Assembly (NCBI GenBank): GCA_038496445.1
Contig: JALMLS010000590.1
Coordinates: 124,001-188,000, forward strand
From: Trichosphaerium sp. ATCC 40318
Taxonomy: Eukaryota; Protista; Tubulinea
Direction of reading: 5' to 3'
DNA: 64,000 nt
Below are positions 14,952 to 54,878 of the stretch, in pieces; position 1 is the first letter of the stretch, and each line of letters begins with the position of its first letter. The notes under the pieces were generated by a model, which saw nothing but the letters and a program-made list of their open reading frames with translations, did not search any database and was not told the origin of the DNA. The translations under genes and the position numbers were made by a program.

Positions 14952-16351
14952 TTACATTAGGCAAAATTCTTTATTTGTTTCTTCAAGGTATGGACGAAGA
15001 ACTTTATATATTTTCCGTGTAGTCCTAGTTTCTACAAGGTAAATTTTTTTGACACCAACAAGATGTTTAACTCCTTTATCTGTTACACCTGTGTAAGCCA
15101 AATCAATCCCGTATACTCCAGCTAATACTTTAAGGCAATCATCTGTTATTTTGGTTCTTGCAAGACCTATAAGATGGACTCCAGCAAGTGCTTTAACACC
15201 TTCATCTGTCACTTGAGTACTACTGAGATTAATTGCATAAACACCACCAGCCAATGTCTTTACACCTTTATCTGTTATACACGTATTGCTCAGATCTACT
15301 ATGCTGGCGCCAAACAAAGCTGTAACTCCATCATCTGTGACATTAGTGTATGATAGATCAATTGCATAAACTCCAGCTAGTGCTTTAACACCATCATCTG
15401 TCACTTTTGTCTCGCTTAGATTAATTGTGTGAACACCAGCCAATTCCTTAATTCCGTCATCTGTGACATCAGTACAACAAAGATTAACTGTGTGTGCACC
15501 AGCCAAGGATTTAATGCCATCATCTGTGATCAAATCACAGAAGCTTAAATCAATTGTATGAACACCGGCCAGTGCTTTAACACCATCATCTGTCACTTTT
15601 GTCTCGCAGAGATTAATTGTGCGAACACCTACTAGTGCCTTAACGCTATTAGCTGTAACGCTGGTGTAGAAAAGGTTAATAGTATGAACGCCAGCTAAAG
15701 CCATTAAACTTGTATCTGTTAAACAATTGCAACAAGCCAAATTAATTGTATGAACACCTGCAAGTGCCTTAACACCATCATTAACTTTTGTCCCATGTAG
15801 CTTAATCGTATGCACACCAACTAAGGCTTTAATACCATCATCTGTGATCAAAAACAGAGGCTTAAATCAATTGTATGAACACCAGACAATGCTTTAATCC
15901 CATCATCAGTTACATCAGTTCTGAAGAGATTAATTGTATGAACACCAGCTAGTGCTTTAACGCCATCATCATTTACTCTTGAATAGGAAAGGTTAATAGT
16001 ATGAACACCAGCTAAAGCCTTTAAACCGTTTTTAACACCGCTGCAATGCTCTAGATTGATGGTATGCACTCCTTGAATGTACTTCAAATGTTTCTCTTTG
16101 ATCCAGAACTTAATAGTTATTGTGTTTGTTTTGATGAGATGTGGCATCGTTTTGAATAGTTTTTTAAGCTTTCTTTTTGACGTGATTACAATCTCTCTTT
16201 TGTTGGTGTATCCCACGTGTTGTATTGCGACTGCTTGTAATAATTTTGAAGTATGTACCACTGACTGCATAGTTAACGTAGAAACGAACTGTAGAATAAG
16301 AATAATAACCTCAACAGGAATTTCATCGAAGAATGCGCTTGTCGACTCCAT
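14952..16351 (-). CDS. Intronless F-box / leucine-rich-repeat protein (frameshift at T5 run 15850-15854)
   Basis: FDEIPVEVIILILQFV F-box, then ~16 repeats of ~22-23 aa (GVHTINLSxTxVTDDGVKALA). ORFs 15848-16351 and 14952-15851 fuse if one T is added. Confidence 0.9.
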
Positions 16352-17597
16352 TTTATTCTCAACACAATTAATAGTTCGAAGTTAGTACATAGCCTCAGTG
16401 TTACTTCGATGCGAGAAAATAATGACGAAATTTTGATGACTTTGTCAACACGTGCTTTTTGCCAATCTACCGCTCAAAATAATTTGGTCTTAGCCACCAG
16501 CTACACCGTAAATTTAACATTCAAATGCCTTTATAGTTACTCGCCACCTAATCTGACAACAAGTGTCGTAGCAGTTTTTTCTTAAAATGAACCAAAAGTG
16601 CCTCAATATTACTTCTACAAGGGGAAAGCTTTTCGAACTAAACAGCCGAAACATATCCAGTTTTGTACGCTTGGCAAAAATAAAACCGCGAACCTTTTAC
16701 GCTAGTGTCTTTTATTCGAAGACAGATTACACCAATAAACTTTATTAACGGTTGAAAAGGCACACCAGTGAAATATAGAACTTTCTCAGTAACTTATTTT
16801 TTTTCCTTTATCTTCAAATGTAGCACTATTTTGTATGGAGGTATTTGTTTCTGTTTGATAGTAGTAAAGCAAGAATACTATAGCGTAGAAACATGGATAC
16901 GGCTAGTTGCTAATTTTTGTAAGAATGTGAGCTCTTATGTGTACAATCTTCTAACAGGTTTTCGTTTGGTAAGTCCTTTACAATTTACAATATGCAGGCC
17001 ACCATATACTGCGAGGTTCACTAGCAGTGGAGCTAGCGATCGCGTCAAACCCATCCCATGTAAGTTTATGTGTAGGCACGCAAGTAAGTACAGGAATGTT
17101 AGTGTTTAGTGGTACAATACGGAGGTTTTTTTTTTCCGCACGTGGTACACAAGTTCTGTATTTTTTATTTACTGGATCTTTCTTACTGATTTCGTTAAAC
17201 TTACCACTTGGACTTGCGATAGTACTAGCTCGCGTACTTTAAAAAGTAGTGCAGAATAAGAAAGCGACTCTAAGTACTACAGAATACTCGAAACAGTTCC
17301 AGGATATAAAATTCTTTGTACAATAAAACAATAGATTACCCGCTCTCCGAACCAACTAGCGCAGTAATGAATCACTCAACGCTAGTTTGAAAATTCGCGA
17401 CATGTATTCTGCTCAGTTTTCACAACATAAGTATCAGTGGCAACAACAAAAGAATCAAGTACGTAGTAGCAACGCATCGAAGATACTCGATCTTTGCGCT
17501 TTGTTTTTTTGGTCGAACATAAAGTCACATGTTGTGAACCAACACCGTTTTTTATGGTATCATTCCGTTTTTTTGTTTTTTAATCTCTTTTTAGAAA

Positions 17598-20500
17598 ATG
17601 CGAGCTACCCTTTTCGTGGTCTCACTGTACTTGTTTGCGCTAGTAAACGGTGCTTCAAGACCAACAGCGTCTGTACCTAACTGCGATGCTGCTTCTTCTG
17701 ACTGGGGATGTCCACGTGCCAGTTTCAGAGTCAGAAACAATGGAGCACTAGATAGACTAACTTGTAGAAAGACCCCAGAACCTCGCATGTCATGGGCACT
17801 TCAAGTCACCCGTAGCAACCGCTATACAACATGGGCTGGTCCAGAAAATGCTAAGCTTAACCAATATGTCCCTGACACTGTTATGGATATCAGTATCCGT
17901 GTCAACCACTACGACTTTAAGTATCGCGGTATACTCATCTACGCTCAGAATAATGCTGGCCAAAGAGTTGGTGAATGGATTCTACCACAAGAAGAGAACC
18001 GTAAGTTTTTGTACAACTTTTTTTTTCACGTGTTCTTTCTTACTTTTTAGTTCTCGTGTTGTGTATTGTCTACATCGCTTACTTTTTCTATAGCATACTT
18101 CCAGTTACCTTTCCCAAACTCTCATGCTTGCCGACAGAGTTTGATGCATAACACCGCCCAACTCAAACCTCTGACATCGACATGGAAGTGGAAGGCTCCA
18201 CCAAAGGGAACAGGAAGAGTGACGTTTCATTGTTTAATCAAGCAAGGCGATGCTAATACAGGCGCTTTCTTTTGGCCAAATGCAAACGCTGGTCCACTTA
18301 GACTCACTGAATCAGCAAAAGCTAAACCACGCCAAACGTGGTTCCAAACAAAGGTAAAACGGGTTTTTTGATATTTAGACTTTTTTTTGCTGTAGTTGTT
18401 GTGGCTTACTTTTCTTCTTAGAGAGGTCAATCTTGTACTGATAGGTGTGCTGAGGAGAACCTTCAATGTGACCGTGTTCATATGGAGCGTGTTAATAGCC
18501 CAGCCCGAATTCAGAGCCTCATCATTCCACAAAGCTTTCCTTGCCAACTTCCTTTTGTTAGCGGATGCAGCAATAAAGGTGTTACAATGGGTACTGACGG
18601 CCTATGCTACTACGATGATACGAGATGTGCAGCTCAAGGACGTAATAGAGGAGCAGTCACGTGCGAGTCAAGAAGTGGTGATGCCAGAATCGGGTATGTC
18701 TTAAAACTTTCTCTTTCTACATTGTTTTACTGACTTCTTTGGCTAGCTTGCGCTTGTGTAAATGTCTTCGCAATACTCTTCCTCCTGCTAATCCTGGAAG
18801 AACAGTCATTGCCGCTAGAGCTGCTGCAACATCACCTGCAACAAAATCAAGCGCCTCATTTGTCTTTATGGCTCTTGCTATCCTTGGCTTGACAATACGC
18901 TCAACAGGAAAGACAACTACATTAATCTTGGCTCTATTTCTCATCGCCTTGGTTTCCTTCCCATCTATACAAGCTCACAATTGGTCTACAAGTTTCTCTA
19001 GAAGCCAAAACATTGCCAGTACCGAAACACCTTGTCCACCAAGAAGAGCAGCTTCTCCTCACGTCCAAGTCAGTAGAACCCAACAATTCGAGATTGAATG
19101 GGCAACAGGCCACACTCAGCCTTCGTACTACGTCATAGTCAAAGCAGCTGATGAGCCAAGACTCAAATCAGTTACATTCGCTTTACTAGAGACTTACTTC
19201 AGAGAAGCGCCTAATGCTCGTTGCCAGAATCTGCCTGTATATCATAGACGTTTCAGAGCACGTGATGCTAGCTTCAACCCACATTCTCAGTTCTACAGTG
19301 GAGAGATTGGACGTAACTCACCTAATTTTATACCAAGACCAGAAGCTTTTGGCGATTGGAGAGATGACGCTAAACTATTCGGATACAAGAACGCTCTAGA
19401 AGTCAAAAATTACTGCGAATACACAAACAACAAACTCAACTTTGTTCTTGGTGTCTTCAAGTTCGAACATCATGCTCACAGACCTGCCGATGCTGATATG
19501 GTCAGACTTAAAATGCCAAGTGGAGCTCCTCTCGGAGACTACGTTATTCAATGGCTATGGAGAGGATACAGAGATTGTATAGATGTTAGCCTTATCAACA
19601 GAAATGTGGCTAATATTTACGGACTACCAAACCCTGCTGGAGGTTTCACGTGCGTACACTAAAACCAAATTCTGTTTTTCATTTTTGAAACGTTCGCGGG
19701 TTCTGACTGTATCTTTTTAGACGTATTGATCATTGTTACATCCCAGGTGCCCGTAACGTGTATGGTACGTAACTTTTAGTGTCATCAAGAACGACAATCG
19801 TCAGAAAATTATCAAAGTTGTACTTTCTTAAAAACTGTTTTTTTACTACTCTTGTTCCTTCTCCTTATGATTTTTAGAATGCCATAGAATATATAACAAT
19901 GTAGACATCTGTGAAAAGCAGTGCGGACAAAGACGCGGATGTAATGCATTTGTTGTTATGCCAAGACAACTACTAGCAAACCAATACAACGGTCAAGCAA
20001 ATCTCATTCCTCAACTATGTATAGATAATGTCGTTAACGTTGGTGAAAATCTAAGAAACGTTCAAATGTGTGTCACTGTACGAGGACGTATACCATCCGA
20101 GACTTTTGGATTAGAAGAAGTAGTGGCGCCAGGTGATCCAGCATACCCAATGACATGTTACGTCAAAGGAGCAGGACGGCTATTCCCTAACTACGTAACT
20201 CCTCCACTACATCAAGATATCCCATGGAGACACGGAACACAATGCATCTCTTGTGATTCTGTGAATCTTAACAAAAACACAACACGTGTACCTAAATGGC
20301 CAATGACGAACGACTGTAGAAACTGCGACTTGGAACCAAAGAATACAGCTCCGTACAATCCACCTAGACTTGTCTTGAGGAATGCTAAACGATACTGCGA
20401 TGGACACGTCACCTATGCAAACCTTGGTGGAGGTAAAAGACATCATACTTGCCCTGGAACCACGTGGAAACAGTGTAAGAAAGAAGTACTCATAAGAGGC

Positions 20501-20740
20501 CGTGCTACACCTTGGCACAACCGTCATTTCGGCAATGACTGTGCAGCAGCTGCTGCTAAAGATCCAGCATGTTCTAATATTGTCTACACACAGGATATTC
20601 CTACTATTACATTCCAAGGTAATCCTGCTCGAAGATGTTTCTGTATGGCGAAGACTGCTTGTTGCAATGGATGTAGAGTAAGAGCACCTAACGGAAATAC
20701 AAATATTTGGAATATTTGGACTCTCAATCGTGGTTCTTGA
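17598..20740 (+). CDS. Secreted multidomain protein: signal peptide - Reeler - Cys-rich - hydrophobic segment - internal signal-like segment - LPMO-like His-brace domain - PAN/apple-like Cys-rich modules (6 exons)
   Basis: Signal MRATLFVVSLYLFALVNG. Reeler motifs YRGILIYAQ..VGEW and WKWKAPPKGTGRVTFHC. Exons approx. 17598-18000, 18094-18352, 18422-18693, 18747-19649, 19720-19764, 19879-20740. SIQA/HNW..., WATGH, MPSGAPLGDYVIQWLWRGYRDCIDV. Confidence 0.8.
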
Positions 20741-21004: not shown

Positions 21005-23012
21005 TCATACATCACGTTTTATTTTTGGTGAAGAAAGAATACTTCTTAATTTCTGTAGTTTAAAACTACCAATATCATCGTCATGTTGTACAATAGGTAT
21101 TTCTATTTGTGGTACTTCATTTTTGTATACAACCTTTGCACGTCCAAATCCGTTAAACTCAGAAGCACAGCATCGAGTATCTGAAAGAAAAAAAAATAAG
21201 TTCAAAAAAGTTCATTCAAATTCCAAACAAAATATTGACGTACAAGCACCCATGTTTGGAAAACGTAATTGATCACCTGGTTCCAATACTTGGAACGGTA
21301 CATTTTCTAAAATCTTGTCTATCGAATCGCATGTAGGACCGTAAAAAGTGCTTTTGAATTGTTTGCTGTCTAAAGATTTTGGTAAGATTTTCTGGTTTAG
21401 ATTTGAATTGTTACCTTTTGGTTTAACAACCAATTCAGGTTTTGGTGTCTTGCTATCAAATATGATATTATTAAAGCAACCGTATAGACCTTCATTTAAG
21501 TAGTACATTACAGTATGTTCACCACTCTTATTGGTCTCCTACAGAAGGACTTTAGTATAAACAAAAATACGAGTATTTCATGTACCTCTCTTTTTCCGAT
21601 GACTGTGGCGATTACAGACGCACATGAACTGACCATGTAACGACCTGGTTCTGCGATAACACGCACTTTAGAGTACGCTTCTGGAAAGACCTCTGGGATA
21701 ATTTTTTTCAAACCAGTAGCGATCTAACATCGAGATAAGTTTTCATTACTCAAAATCTGGTATTACCTCTGGTAGAGTTGTTGCTTCTCCTTCCCAGTTG
21801 CCTGGAAAGCCCCTCCAATGTCTAGTAGAGAAAATTCTTCGAACCCATATTCCTGAGAGAGGCGTAAGCAATAGATCTGTACAGAGGTGTGATAGACAAC
21901 GTACCTCAGCCATGTCAAATACTTTTCTAACTTTATGAAGTGCCATTGTAAATGCTTTTGGGTCTGTTACTTTACTACCCACGTGAAAAGATACTCCGAT
22001 AACGTTCAAGCCGAGAGAAGATGCATGTGATAGGAGATCAGGTACATCTAGTTGATAAAGAGTTAACATTATTTGAGGAACAAGCGCAAAGTGCGTACCT
22101 CTAAAACGAGCTCCGAATTTATTGGATAGAGGATGCAAAGAATAAGAGTTATCTACTGCAATTCTCAATATCAATTTTGCTTCTGGGTGTATTGCTTTTA
22201 TCTTCTCTAGCTCGTATTTTGAGTCAAACACAAGTAAGTCAACCCCACACTCTGTAAGAAATATGTAAGAAAAAAAATCATTCTTCCGAAAAATAAAAAA
22301 AAGCAGTTCAAGAACCGTTAGCATAAAAGGACTGATGAATTCCTGATTTTAAAAATTTCTATTGAATGACTGATTTCTAATGTAAAAGTCCTTAAAAAGA
22401 ACCTGTAGTGCTCTTTGCATTTCGGAAAGAGAAGAAGGAACCATTTTCCAAAAAAACAAGAAAACAAAAAGTTGTAAGTTTAAAATATTAAATACCTTGT
22501 GCTTTCTTTAAATGAGAGTAAGGTTTGCATGGGTGTGCGTATACTATTCTGCTTGGATCCACACCAAGTGACAAAATCTGATAAGAACAAAAATGTTAAT
22601 CGATCGATCATAAAGCATTCAACAAGAATATAATCGTAACGTACGAGCTCTATTTCAGCTTGACTTGCGCAGTCAAATCCGCAATCAAGTTGTGCCAATT
22701 CTTGGCAAATACGTCGATCAGGATTACATTTTACGGCTATAAACAGTTAGAATACACTCTAGAGAGGTTATATAACAACATACCGTAATGCGCAGTGATG
22801 TTTGGAAGGTTTTCTAAAAAATACGTGTCAACGTTGATAAACTCAAGTAAAAACAGTTCTTTACGCTATAACTAGGCGAAATAGCGTTGTTTTGTAAGTG
22901 TATGAAATTCCTGTCAATGTTTACCTTTCCACTGCTTTTGCTTCTTCCGTACGTCCTCCAAGTCAACGACGTATAGAGGGTGGTCATCATTGTATGTTCG
23001 ATTATTGATCAT
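21005..23012 (-). CDS. ODC1: Ornithine decarboxylase (fold-type III PLP decarboxylase)
   Basis: HYAVKCNPD (PLP Lys), FDCASQAEI, KFGA, FHVGS, LDIGGGFPG, AEPGRY, YYLNEGLYG, YGPTCDSID, FPNMGAY, FNGF. Confidence 0.95.
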
Positions 23013-24182: not shown

Positions 24183-24932
24183 TCAAATATCTAGAAGATA
24201 TGTGGTTGAACATCCTTCAAAATCTACTGCACCATTACTTCTCCACATCTTCACAGACCCTTTTTCCCTGTCACCAACCGTTGTATACATCCTACTATCA
24301 GACTGTTGACCATTAGGATACCAAGCTCTAAATTCTCCAACTGGCCTATCTCCTTTATATACACAGTGATCGCATCTAGACCCATCCACGTACCAAGACT
24401 CAACAACACCTTCCCTTAAGCCATTGACATAAGTCCCTTGTTTTAACAGCTCTCCAGACGCATACCAATGCTGGTATTTACCTTCTCTCAGCCCGTGGAC
24501 ACAGTTATAGTGCTCAGCAATCTGTCCATTCGGGTAATAGTGTGTAACTGGTCCGTGTTTCTTGTCATCAACGTAATTACATTCAAGAGCGATTGTACCG
24601 TTCTTTTGCCATGTTTTACATATTCCATGTTTCTTACCATGTGCGTAAGTACACCATTGTACCCCATTAGGCGTACGAAGCTTGTACAAGCCGTGTTTAT
24701 CAAGGTTTGAGTCAAAACGAGACGTAACAGCTGCTTGGTAACATAACAGCGGCCAATGCCTGAAAGCGAGTCTATCCGCCGAATGGATCAAATATTGAAC
24801 TTCCAGAGGCAAATCCAAGATATTAAAGCCACTAATAATAACAATCAACCTAAAATTTGCGTACAATGCGGTTTTTCGGTCTTAGTACCTTTCCTCCTCG
24901 TTAGGTGCACTTGTTTTTAACTCCTCACTCAT
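24183..24932 (-). CDS. F-box-like + MORN-variant (YwqK-like) repeat protein 1
   Basis: ILDLPLEVQYLI...WPLLCYQAAVTSRFDSNLDKHG, then 24-aa repeats GKKHG..W..NG; one 5' intron. Confidence 0.85.
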
Positions 24933-25271: not shown

Positions 25272-26991
25272 TCATGCAACATGTTCTCCAACCCATTCAC
25301 CTTTAGAATAAATCCCACTTTCAAGTTTAACACCGTTACTATTCCACCTTTCAAAGATACCATCTTTCTTTCCATTCGAGTAATAACCACGCTCAGACAT
25401 CTGCCTTGTGTCTTTATACCAACGTATTTTTATTGCACTCGTTTCTCCATTCACCTCTGTAATCACCTCACGTGATATAATCAAACCAGTCTTCTTACTA
25501 AAAACCTCTTGCAAACCCTCTAAGACACCGTGGTTGTACGTTTTCTTTGATAGCAGAAGCCTTGTTTTAGGGTCCCATGTTTCCCTTATCCCATGGCACA
25601 CATCACCTTTGTACATTGCACTCAATGTCCTCAATCCAGTCTGTTCATCAAACAATTCTCGTAAACCATCCAATTGTCCATGTTTGTAAGTTTCCCTTAA
25701 TGTTTTTTGCTTAGTTCGTTCACTAAACTCCTCTCTTAGCCCATGATACATACCATCTTTGTACATTTCACTCAGTGTCTTAGCCCCTGTCTGTTCACTA
25801 AACACTTCTTTCAACCCAGTAAGCATTCCGTTACAATACTCTTCAGTAGATATTAAAGAAGCGCTGTCGTCAATGACCATATCTTTCGCTAAGTCTAGAG
25901 ATAAACCAACCAACTTTCCACTTTCGTATTTAATACAATCACTTAGTTTCCATGATCCTGAATAGCCTAGTGTCTTACCATGACGTTCAAGATTACGACC
26001 AAGTGGAGACACAATACTTAAAGAAATGCTATGATTATTAAGCCGTTCATTATTGGCTATATCTATAACCCTTAAATGGTTTCTACAATCAATGTATCTT
26101 GTTATATCATTATCTTTTAGATGCATTTTTCCTTTCCAAGATTTTGGAATTGTGCATGGTATTGTCGGTTCAGGGATATCATATTGGGAGAAAGCGCTAG
26201 CAGGAAATGGTGGTTCAAAGGCGATAAACTGTAGATTATCTAAAGAACGGATGAAGAGTACATGGCCATCGTAATCATAAGCAATTTTTGAATGAGAATT
26301 TTTCCATGTTCCAACTTTTTTGTCCTTTTCGTAATACCCTGATAATACTACTGTATGGTATTCATCTTTTTCTTCGTATTTACCATGTAAAAGACCATCT
26401 TCATACTCTGAAAAAACTAAAGCTTCAAAGTCTATCAGAAAATGTTTGCCATGTTTTTTCCCATTTTTAAAACCATAAGTTTTAACTAACCCCGCTGTGT
26501 CATCATACTCCTCATACATTCCATCGGCCCTTACTCCTTCTTTATATTTGACACGTGTGCGTAATACGTTTGTACGTAGGTATGTTGATGTGAATACTCC
26601 ATGGCGTTTGCCATGAACAAATTCGCAAGTATCTAAGCAAGGCAGCTTGTTAAGAGATATCAGCTGCTCATAGTAACTCTTTTTTCTTTTGAAAAGTCCA
26701 TGCTTTTGCAAACACGTGTCAAACCTTGAAGCAACGGCAAACTCATAATTCAGTAATGGGAACTTCTTTTCCAAGTCCGCATCTTCTCTGGCAATATCAT
26801 AAATACATCGAAGTACTTCTGGAGGTAGATATTCGACTATGTTTCTATATTACGAGTTATTTTTAGCATTTTGCGAAAAAAGCGAAGTAGTCGTACTCAT
26901 CACTCGCTCTGTGAGCCTCTACTATTTCCCTATTGATCTTGGTATGCGCAAATCGCTTCAGAATATTAATCGCAGGTTCCTCAGATGACAT
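25272..26991 (-). CDS. F-box-like + MORN-variant repeat protein 2 (long; start uncertain, possibly ~27160)
   Basis: VEYLPPEVLRCIY...FPLLNYEFAVASRFDTCLQKHG; two MORN-like blocks in ORF 25272-26774. Confidence 0.8.
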
Positions 26992-53942: not shown

Positions 53943-54878
53943 ATGGTATGTTCGCATTTTCCTAAATAAACCGTCACAGCACCTTACGGCGTTATTTAGA
54001 CAACAATAAAACAGAATTACAGTCTATTAGACCTTCCTATAGAGCTACACCTTGATATTACGGATTTAGACTTTGAAACCTATAAAAAATGGCCGTTGCT
54101 AACAAAACACATGGCAACGATAACAAGGTTCGATAGCGACTTCAAAAAGCATGGAAAGTGGCTTAAACAATACAAAGAACAAGGAAGAATGTGTGAGCAA
54201 TGTGTCTTCGACCATGGTTCAAGAGAAGGTCAGTGTAAGAAGTGGCATGTCAATGGACAACTTGCTGGGGTATCAAATTATTCCAGAGGTAAGCTTGAAG
54301 GAGAGCACAAGAGATGGCATTCAAATGGTCGAAAGTCTATGTGTTGTCATTACGTCAATGGAAAGAAAGAAGGAGAGTACTTACGCTATATAAATGATGC
54401 AATGTATTGGCAGTGTAACTATGTCAAAGACAAACTTGAAGGAGAATACAGAGAGTGGTATAAACATGGAGATTTAAAAGAGATTTGTCATTACGCTAGT
54501 GGGATACTTGAAGGAGAGTACAAGAAATGGTATTATTATGGTAAGGTGAAAGAGTATTGTACATATGTCAATGGTAAGCTAGAGGGAGAGTTTAAGTATT
54601 GGCATTATAGTGGTCAATTGAATGAGCAGTGTTATTATGTCAACGGCAAACTGGAAGGAGTTTACAAGAGTTGGTTTATGAATGGCCAAGTGAGCGAGAT
54701 TAGTAACTATGTCAATGGCAAACGACATGGAGAGTATAAACTATGGTATCAAGATGGGCGACTATCAACAGAATGTGTATATGTTGATGGTATACGAGAC
54801 GGTGAGTTCAAGAGATACTCCTACGAAGGAGTATTGGTACTACAGGGTAAGTACATTAATGGTAAACAAGAAGACTGA
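53943..54878 (+). CDS. F-box-like + MORN-variant repeat protein 5
   Basis: ATG|intron|TTIKQNYSLLDLPIELHLDI...WPLLTKHMATITRFDSDFKKHG + ~10 repeats YVNGKLEGEYKxWYxNG. Confidence 0.85.

Follow-up and report, generated by a model that had tools for sequence, protein, structure and literature searches.

The gene at 17598-20740 (+) of the window, which is the whole 64,000-nucleotide stretch analysed from Trichosphaerium sp. ATCC 40318 (contig JALMLS010000590.1, positions 124,001 to 188,000), is best explained, with a probability of about 0.72, as a cellular polyprotein cleaved in the endoplasmic reticulum (ER) by signal peptidase, a cut that would free the N-terminal histidine (His1) of a copper protein similar to the lytic polysaccharide monooxygenases (LPMOs). 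LPMOs and other histidine-brace proteins require the free amino group of residue 1. Because of this, they are sought and annotated only directly after an N-terminal signal peptide, and matches found deeper in a protein are usually dismissed. Polyproteins split by signal peptidase are known mainly from viruses.

In the proposed mechanism, an N-terminal signal peptide would bring a Reeler domain and a Cys-rich domain into the lumen, and a first hydrophobic segment (segment 1) would then halt the transfer and anchor this upstream module in the membrane. The basic loop that follows would remain cytosolic, and a second hydrophobic segment (segment 2) together with the residues PSIQA would act as a second complete signal peptide, with which translocation would resume. 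Signal peptidase would cut between Ala (18973-18975) and His (18976-18978), that is, at IQA/H, and the alpha-amino group of His1 would become available for a copper histidine brace with His46 and an axial Tyr198. Two products would be made at a 1:1 ratio: a membrane-tethered Reeler protein and a soluble His-brace protein with a Cys-rich tail. An earlier sequence-only reading of this DNA had called the gene self-splitting, which is the wrong word, since the cut would be the work of the ER signal peptidase. The basis computed here consists of a single in-frame exon, the conservation of the junction, the invariant residues of the domain, its fold and the single transcripts of relatives.

The junction and the fused frame

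The open reading frame (ORF) 18739-19662 translates into the very string quoted in the sequence-only reading; the order of segments that had been described in the middle of the gene was confirmed, and every coordinate agrees. At the start of exon 4 (18747-19649) lies LRLCKC (18748-18765), the last of the upstream module's conserved motifs, recognised by its R-x-C-x-C conservation; a linker rich in Ala, Ser, Thr and Pro follows it up to 18858. Segment 1 (FVFMALAILGLTI, 18859-18897) is the predicted stop-transfer anchor of the Reeler product and is followed by the loop RSTGKTTT (18898-18921), which is predicted to be cytosolic and equivalent to the n-region of a signal peptide. The internal signal peptide (18922-18975) would be made of the h-region LILALFLIALVSF (18922-18960) and the c-region PSIQA (18961-18975), with the predicted cut after 18975. 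Next comes the LPMO-like domain, a putative His-brace copper domain (18976-19647) referred to here as the HNW domain after its first three residues, in which His1 lies at 18976-18978, His46 at 19111-19113 and Tyr198 at 19567-19569. The fusion of the upstream module to the HNW domain does not depend on splicing: a single exon, exon 4, encodes the last part of that module, then the linker, the two hydrophobic segments and the domain itself, all in the same frame and without any stop. His1 is residue 389 of the splice model.

The junction was compared in the 130 relatives in which residue 1 of the query aligns. The domain starts with HNW in almost all of them. It is internal in 90 (typically at residue 340-400) and directly follows a classical N-terminal signal peptide in the other 40. 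At the sequence level, the histidine comes right after a signal-peptide-like h/c-region in almost all 130. At position -1, A, G or S is found in 90/90 internal and 39/40 N-terminal relatives (129/130), and the residues at -3 are A, V, S, T, C or G whether the domain is internal or N-terminal. In 72 of the 90 internal relatives, the 80 residues ahead of HNW include two hydrophobic segments, whose median length is 16 and whose median gap is 5; most of the remaining 18 have a weaker first segment, as judged by eye. The loops of 82 relatives contain 159 K and R in total as compared with 32 D and E, and at least one K or R is found in 78 of these loops. When a crude signal-peptide rule was applied, 76/87 relatives passed it at the exact junction, as compared with 0.4% of other positions. 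The pattern recurs in 90 independent cluster representatives and is far beyond chance.

Because of the residues at -1 and -3, the paired segments, the charge of the loop and the passing of the rule, the loop, segment 2 and the c-region can be read as a complete n-h-c signal peptide. Segment 1 would be the membrane crossing required by segment 2 to insert with its N-terminus inside and its C-terminus outside. The order of elements of a polyprotein of this kind is found in the family: an N-terminal signal peptide, a stop-transfer segment, a short positive loop and an internal h-region, with positions -3 and -1 occupied by small residues. It had been anticipated that homologues would keep the arrangement of transmembrane (TM) segment, loop, signal and HNW, and this is what was found. 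A Ser/Ala-rich stretch lies ahead of segment 1, yet this segment is internal in the precursor, and the loop and the signal peptide would still follow it after the cut. As regards the anchor of the upstream product, the paired segments with their basic loop would favour a TM hairpin over a glycosylphosphatidylinositol (GPI) signal, which is a possible alternative. A search for upstream modules that stand alone and end at segment 1, which would speak for an origin of the segment as a GPI signal, gave only fragments and truncated gene calls.

The fused frame is also carried by single transcripts. Fused ORFs have been found on Trinity transcripts of Flabellula baltica (two paralogs), on a transcript of Cavostelium apophysatum whose ORF is marked complete, and on further ones from MMETSP transcriptomes. 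Metatranscriptome contigs of nearly the length of the ORF carry the fusion as well, for example P0001, with 976 aa on 2994 nt. At the genomic level, a 182-kb contig of another, intron-poor eukaryote from an ENA metagenome assembly contains an uninterrupted single-exon fused ORF of 3831 nt that encodes 1276 aa (L001 3001-6831); this fused gene is flanked by an ankyrin-repeat gene and by a gene for a CPSF_A/RSE1-type beta-propeller. Chance read-through of two adjacent genes was considered and rejected, as dozens of distant species have preserved the fused frame, which also occurs on transcripts.

In a tree of 91 HNW domains, the internal forms are intermingled with the N-terminal ones, and at least nine changes are forced by well-supported branches. 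Such a distribution would be expected of an internal signal peptide that works as well as an N-terminal one. Some close pairs on the tree are unlike only in their architecture, such as P0057 (internal, residue 355) and P0071 (N-terminal), or P0022 and P0078. Such pairs could mean that the upstream module was lost or gained several times, or that a single gene uses alternative first exons.

The HNW domain, its fold and the putative copper site

An exhaustive HMMER search with His1-224 as query gave 363 cluster representatives at E<=1e-3 and 163 at E<=1e-10. The HNW family comprises hundreds of clusters at 50% identity and is distributed among Amoebozoa, Rhizaria and uncultured protists. An alignment of 70 sequences (27-38% identity) has no more than seven invariant columns, namely H1, N2, W3, R9, H46, G187 and Y198. 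The second histidine (H46) and a tyrosine of the axial type near the end of the domain (Y198, where the last beta-strand of the model starts) belong to this set, so that the three residues proposed by the sequence-only reading as the metal site, His1, His46 and Tyr198, are all conserved without exception in these sequences.

Pfam returned no family match for the window domain, no family common to the 70 relatives and no LPMO family. A phmmer search of the Protein Data Bank (PDB) with the HNW domain gave no significant match, the best being the AA15 protein 5msz (E 0.44, 20% identity), and a profile search of the PDB found nothing. The sole echo at the sequence level is a weak resemblance to the AA15 motif around '...QW.WR...DC.D' within that same match. 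The HNW domain has been treated as a new LPMO-like family because it has no significant match to Pfam LPMO_10, AA9, BIM1-like or CAZy AA15.

The AlphaFold2 model of the HNW domain, obtained with the 70-sequence alignment, has a mean pLDDT of 93.3 and a pTM of 0.90, and consists of a beta-sandwich with two helices. When structures were ranked with VIA-align, LPMOs and LPMO-like copper proteins of seven families were placed on top; the list includes X325, AA15, AA13, AA10, AA9, AA11, AA16 and fusolin, and the result was obtained again on repetition. In these alignments, residue 1 of the model falls on the mature N-terminal histidine of each LPMO or X325-type chain. The LPMO signal was seen with VIA-align and not with Foldseek, which returned weak and mixed beta-sandwich matches (TM-score around 0.3) from the PDB, the Swiss-Prot AFDB and the AFDB clusters. 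The neighbours obtained with a protein language model are eukaryotic clusters, partly with LPMO_10 or BIM1-like domains, and a shape search of the ESM Atlas gave TM-scores of 0.52-0.54 to haptophyte clusters, one of which carries LPMO_10.

The features that define the histidine brace and the LPMO fold have been described (PMC7924993, PMC10952591). Among them, the model shows a beta-sandwich core of the immunoglobulin/FnIII type, whose N-terminus lies at the putative metal site. An LPMO beta-sandwich had been expected of the fragment that begins at His1, and the model agrees with this expectation, residue 1 lying on the mature His1 of X325, AA15, AA9, AA10, AA11 and AA13. It is concluded that the HNW domain would be a new family among the LPMO-like His-brace proteins.

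Gene model, partner module, tail and neighbouring genes

The window is eukaryotic DNA with around 37% GC and short GT..AG introns. Linking the exons at canonical splice sites resulted in one open frame, a six-exon model on the forward strand (17598-20740) that encodes about 914 residues. The exons lie at 17598-18000, 18094-18353, 18422-18693, 18747-19649, 19721-19764 and 19878-20740. Besides, the 5' untranslated region contains a GT..AG intron (17459-17594, +), whose 3' end lies three bases ahead of the start codon; it is defined by one RNA contig that joins 17458 to 17595 and has only 22 letters upstream of the intron.

For the source organism, the RNA evidence consists of fragmentary contigs. 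One of them confirms the 18353/18422 junction. The 18693/18747 junction restores the sequence ARIG/LRLCKC, whose counterpart, PRIGYRFCTC, is contiguous in a transcript of relative P0027. The R-x-C-x-C motif is visible in other relatives too, and both of its cysteines are nearly invariant in the upstream-module alignment (A2). The 18693/18747 junction is supported by homology, because the rebuilt ARIG-LRLCKC matches the contiguous motif of relatives. RNA contigs with a depth of up to ~260x match only two short conserved stretches of the gene (17643-17713 and 19459-19585) at 90-95% identity and then diverge; they are probably transcripts of more highly expressed paralogs in the same organism. 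A second copy of the gene was searched for within the 64-kb window and none was found.

The upstream module opens with the N-terminal signal peptide MRATLFVVSLYLFALVNG, read from the sequence at 17598-17651 (+); a hydrophobic segment is located within the first 40 residues in 56/90 internal relatives. Residues 1-388 of the window protein align to dozens of fused relatives with E values from 1e-65 to 1e-31. The structure of this module was modelled for relative P0001 (pLDDT 91.7) and has two parts. The first is a Reeler domain (PF02014), identified both by a match to the family model and by its fold, which in the window gene is encoded by exons 1 and 2 (17652-18353, +). The second is the Cys-rich domain encoded by exon 3 (18422-18693, +), which resembles the C-terminal luminal domain of MGAT5.

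At the other end of the gene, the end of exon 4, exon 5 and exon 6 encode a Cys-rich C-terminal tail (19648-20740, +; stop at 20738-20740). This tail is homologous to those of relatives, with E values down to 1e-29. It has no hydrophobic end, and TM-like segments downstream of the HNW domain are absent in 73/86 internal relatives. The tail had been described as PAN/apple-like; a weak lead from the language model points the same way, but Pfam is negative and the tail is at most weakly PAN-like. The Cys-rich tail is probably ligand-binding.

The gene that lies just downstream (21212-22324, -) is a multi-exon ornithine/arginine decarboxylase-like gene, convergent with the 3' end of the polyprotein gene, in which Pfam Orn_Arg_deC_N was matched with an E value of 6e-23 for 21746-22324. 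Three other ORFs of the window (24183-24866, -; 54096-54878, +; 14952-15851, -) include two with MORN_2 (E 5.5e-17 and 8.6e-20) and one with LRR_6 (E 5e-28), and a 500-aa ORF at 25272-26774 (-) has no Pfam match.

Alternative readings and known systems

Several points weigh against the polyprotein reading. The convergence of His1, His46 and Tyr198 into a putative copper histidine brace with axial tyrosine is a prediction; copper binding, redox activity and a polysaccharide substrate are inferred parts of the reading, and so are the cleavage itself and the question of whether the two products stay associated. The family is joined to no known LPMO family by sequence or profile searches. Segment 1, with 13-16 residues, is short for a stable TM helix, and the Met codon that lies inside it, at 18868, could serve an internal start. 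Finally, RNA depth is zero over 18697-18950, which leaves the 18693/18747 junction and the continuity of the transcript uncovered in the source organism.

The paired segments and the basic loop would fit equally well with a membrane protein that crosses twice by means of a permanent hairpin and is never cleaved. The Reeler and HNW modules would then be displayed on the outer face, the histidine would remain internal, no brace would form and the HNW domain would be a binding module. As long as cleavage comes from inference this arrangement has to be considered, but it seems unlikely, as it leaves without explanation the A, G or S present at -1 in all 90 internal relatives and the signal-peptidase-type residues at -3. 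Neither does it explain that the domain begins at the exact residue that follows the N-terminal signal peptides of 40 relatives, and it has no need for H1 to be invariant alongside H46 and Y198. In another reading there is no copper brace, and the HNW domain would be a generic Ig-like beta-sandwich, binding carbohydrate or protein, with an N-terminus conserved for some other purpose. That is improbable as well: the invariant set consists of exactly the N-terminal histidine, a second histidine and a tyrosine of the last strand, most of the top structural ranks are occupied by LPMO and X325 families aligned from residue 1, and both the language-model neighbours with LPMO_10 or BIM1-like domains and the weak AA15 motif match point to the same group of proteins.

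It has also been considered that the gene contains two expression units, the HNW protein being made mainly from its own transcript or from Met 18868, with a long N-terminal signal peptide, and the open frame being incidental or rarely used. This is very unlikely, despite the Met within segment 1, the region left unbridged by RNA contigs and the occasional closeness on the tree of internal and N-terminal forms (P0057 and P0071), which could represent alternative first exons. The exon that encodes the HNW domain also encodes, in frame with it, the conserved RLCKC motif of the upstream module, so any mRNA with a complete Reeler module reads into HNW. Single transcripts of several species carry the fused ORF, and the upstream module on its own was found only as fragments. 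A separate start at Met 18868 had been put forward as grounds for abandoning the polyprotein interpretation. Such a Met does exist in this gene, but 25 of the 94 internal relatives have no Met within the 45 residues upstream of HNW, and because of this the family cannot, as a general rule, make the domain from an AUG of its own. The overall interpretation of the sequence-only reading is supported by the analysis, and those of its proposed computational checks that were run all gave the outcome it had predicted.

If the polyprotein reading is true, there is a whole family in which a His-brace domain lies ~350-400 residues into the precursor and an internal signal peptide has been kept right before the histidine. 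This would mean a new LPMO-like family, from eukaryotes that have received little study, and a rare cellular case of a polyprotein split by signal peptidase. It would also provide a simple rule to find hidden His-brace domains in other multidomain proteins. Related to this, co-synthesis at 1:1 would suggest the membrane-anchored Reeler module as a functional partner of the copper protein, and would give the Reeler domain a first testable role in organisms other than animals. In the literature, with most subscription journals outside the coverage, no LPMO or His-brace protein made via an internal signal peptide or a polyprotein was found.

Among the known His-brace proteins, the similarity of the AA15 LPMOs (TdAA15A from Thermobia domestica, PDB 5msz) to the HNW domain is not significant (E 0.44, 20% identity). 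In contrast to AA15, the HNW family has an invariant HNW N-terminus and the second histidine at position 46, and in most of its members the domain lies elsewhere than at the precursor's N-terminus. X325 proteins bear their own C-terminal GPI anchor and have Asp where the HNW family has Tyr198. As compared with X325/Bim1 (LaX325, PDB 6ibh), the predicted anchor is here on the upstream partner, and the His-brace product has none of its own. The reeler domain of F-spondin (PDB 3coo/2zot; PF02014) offers a counterpart for the first part of the upstream module; in the present gene, however, the Reeler domain is followed by an MGAT5-like Cys-rich domain, the hairpin and the LPMO-like domain.

The glycoprotein polyproteins of viruses, in which signal-peptidase sites have been described (for example, PMC3937272), are a parallel in architecture. 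In bunyavirus Gn/Gc, flavivirus prM/E and pestivirus polyproteins, the order of elements from the signal peptide to the second ectodomain is the same as here, and 1:1 products are obtained through the signal peptidase of the host, as is likewise proposed for this gene. Unlike these viral systems, the present gene family is cellular and belongs to free-living protists, and the cut would also create the catalytic or metal-binding residue at the N-terminus of the second product.

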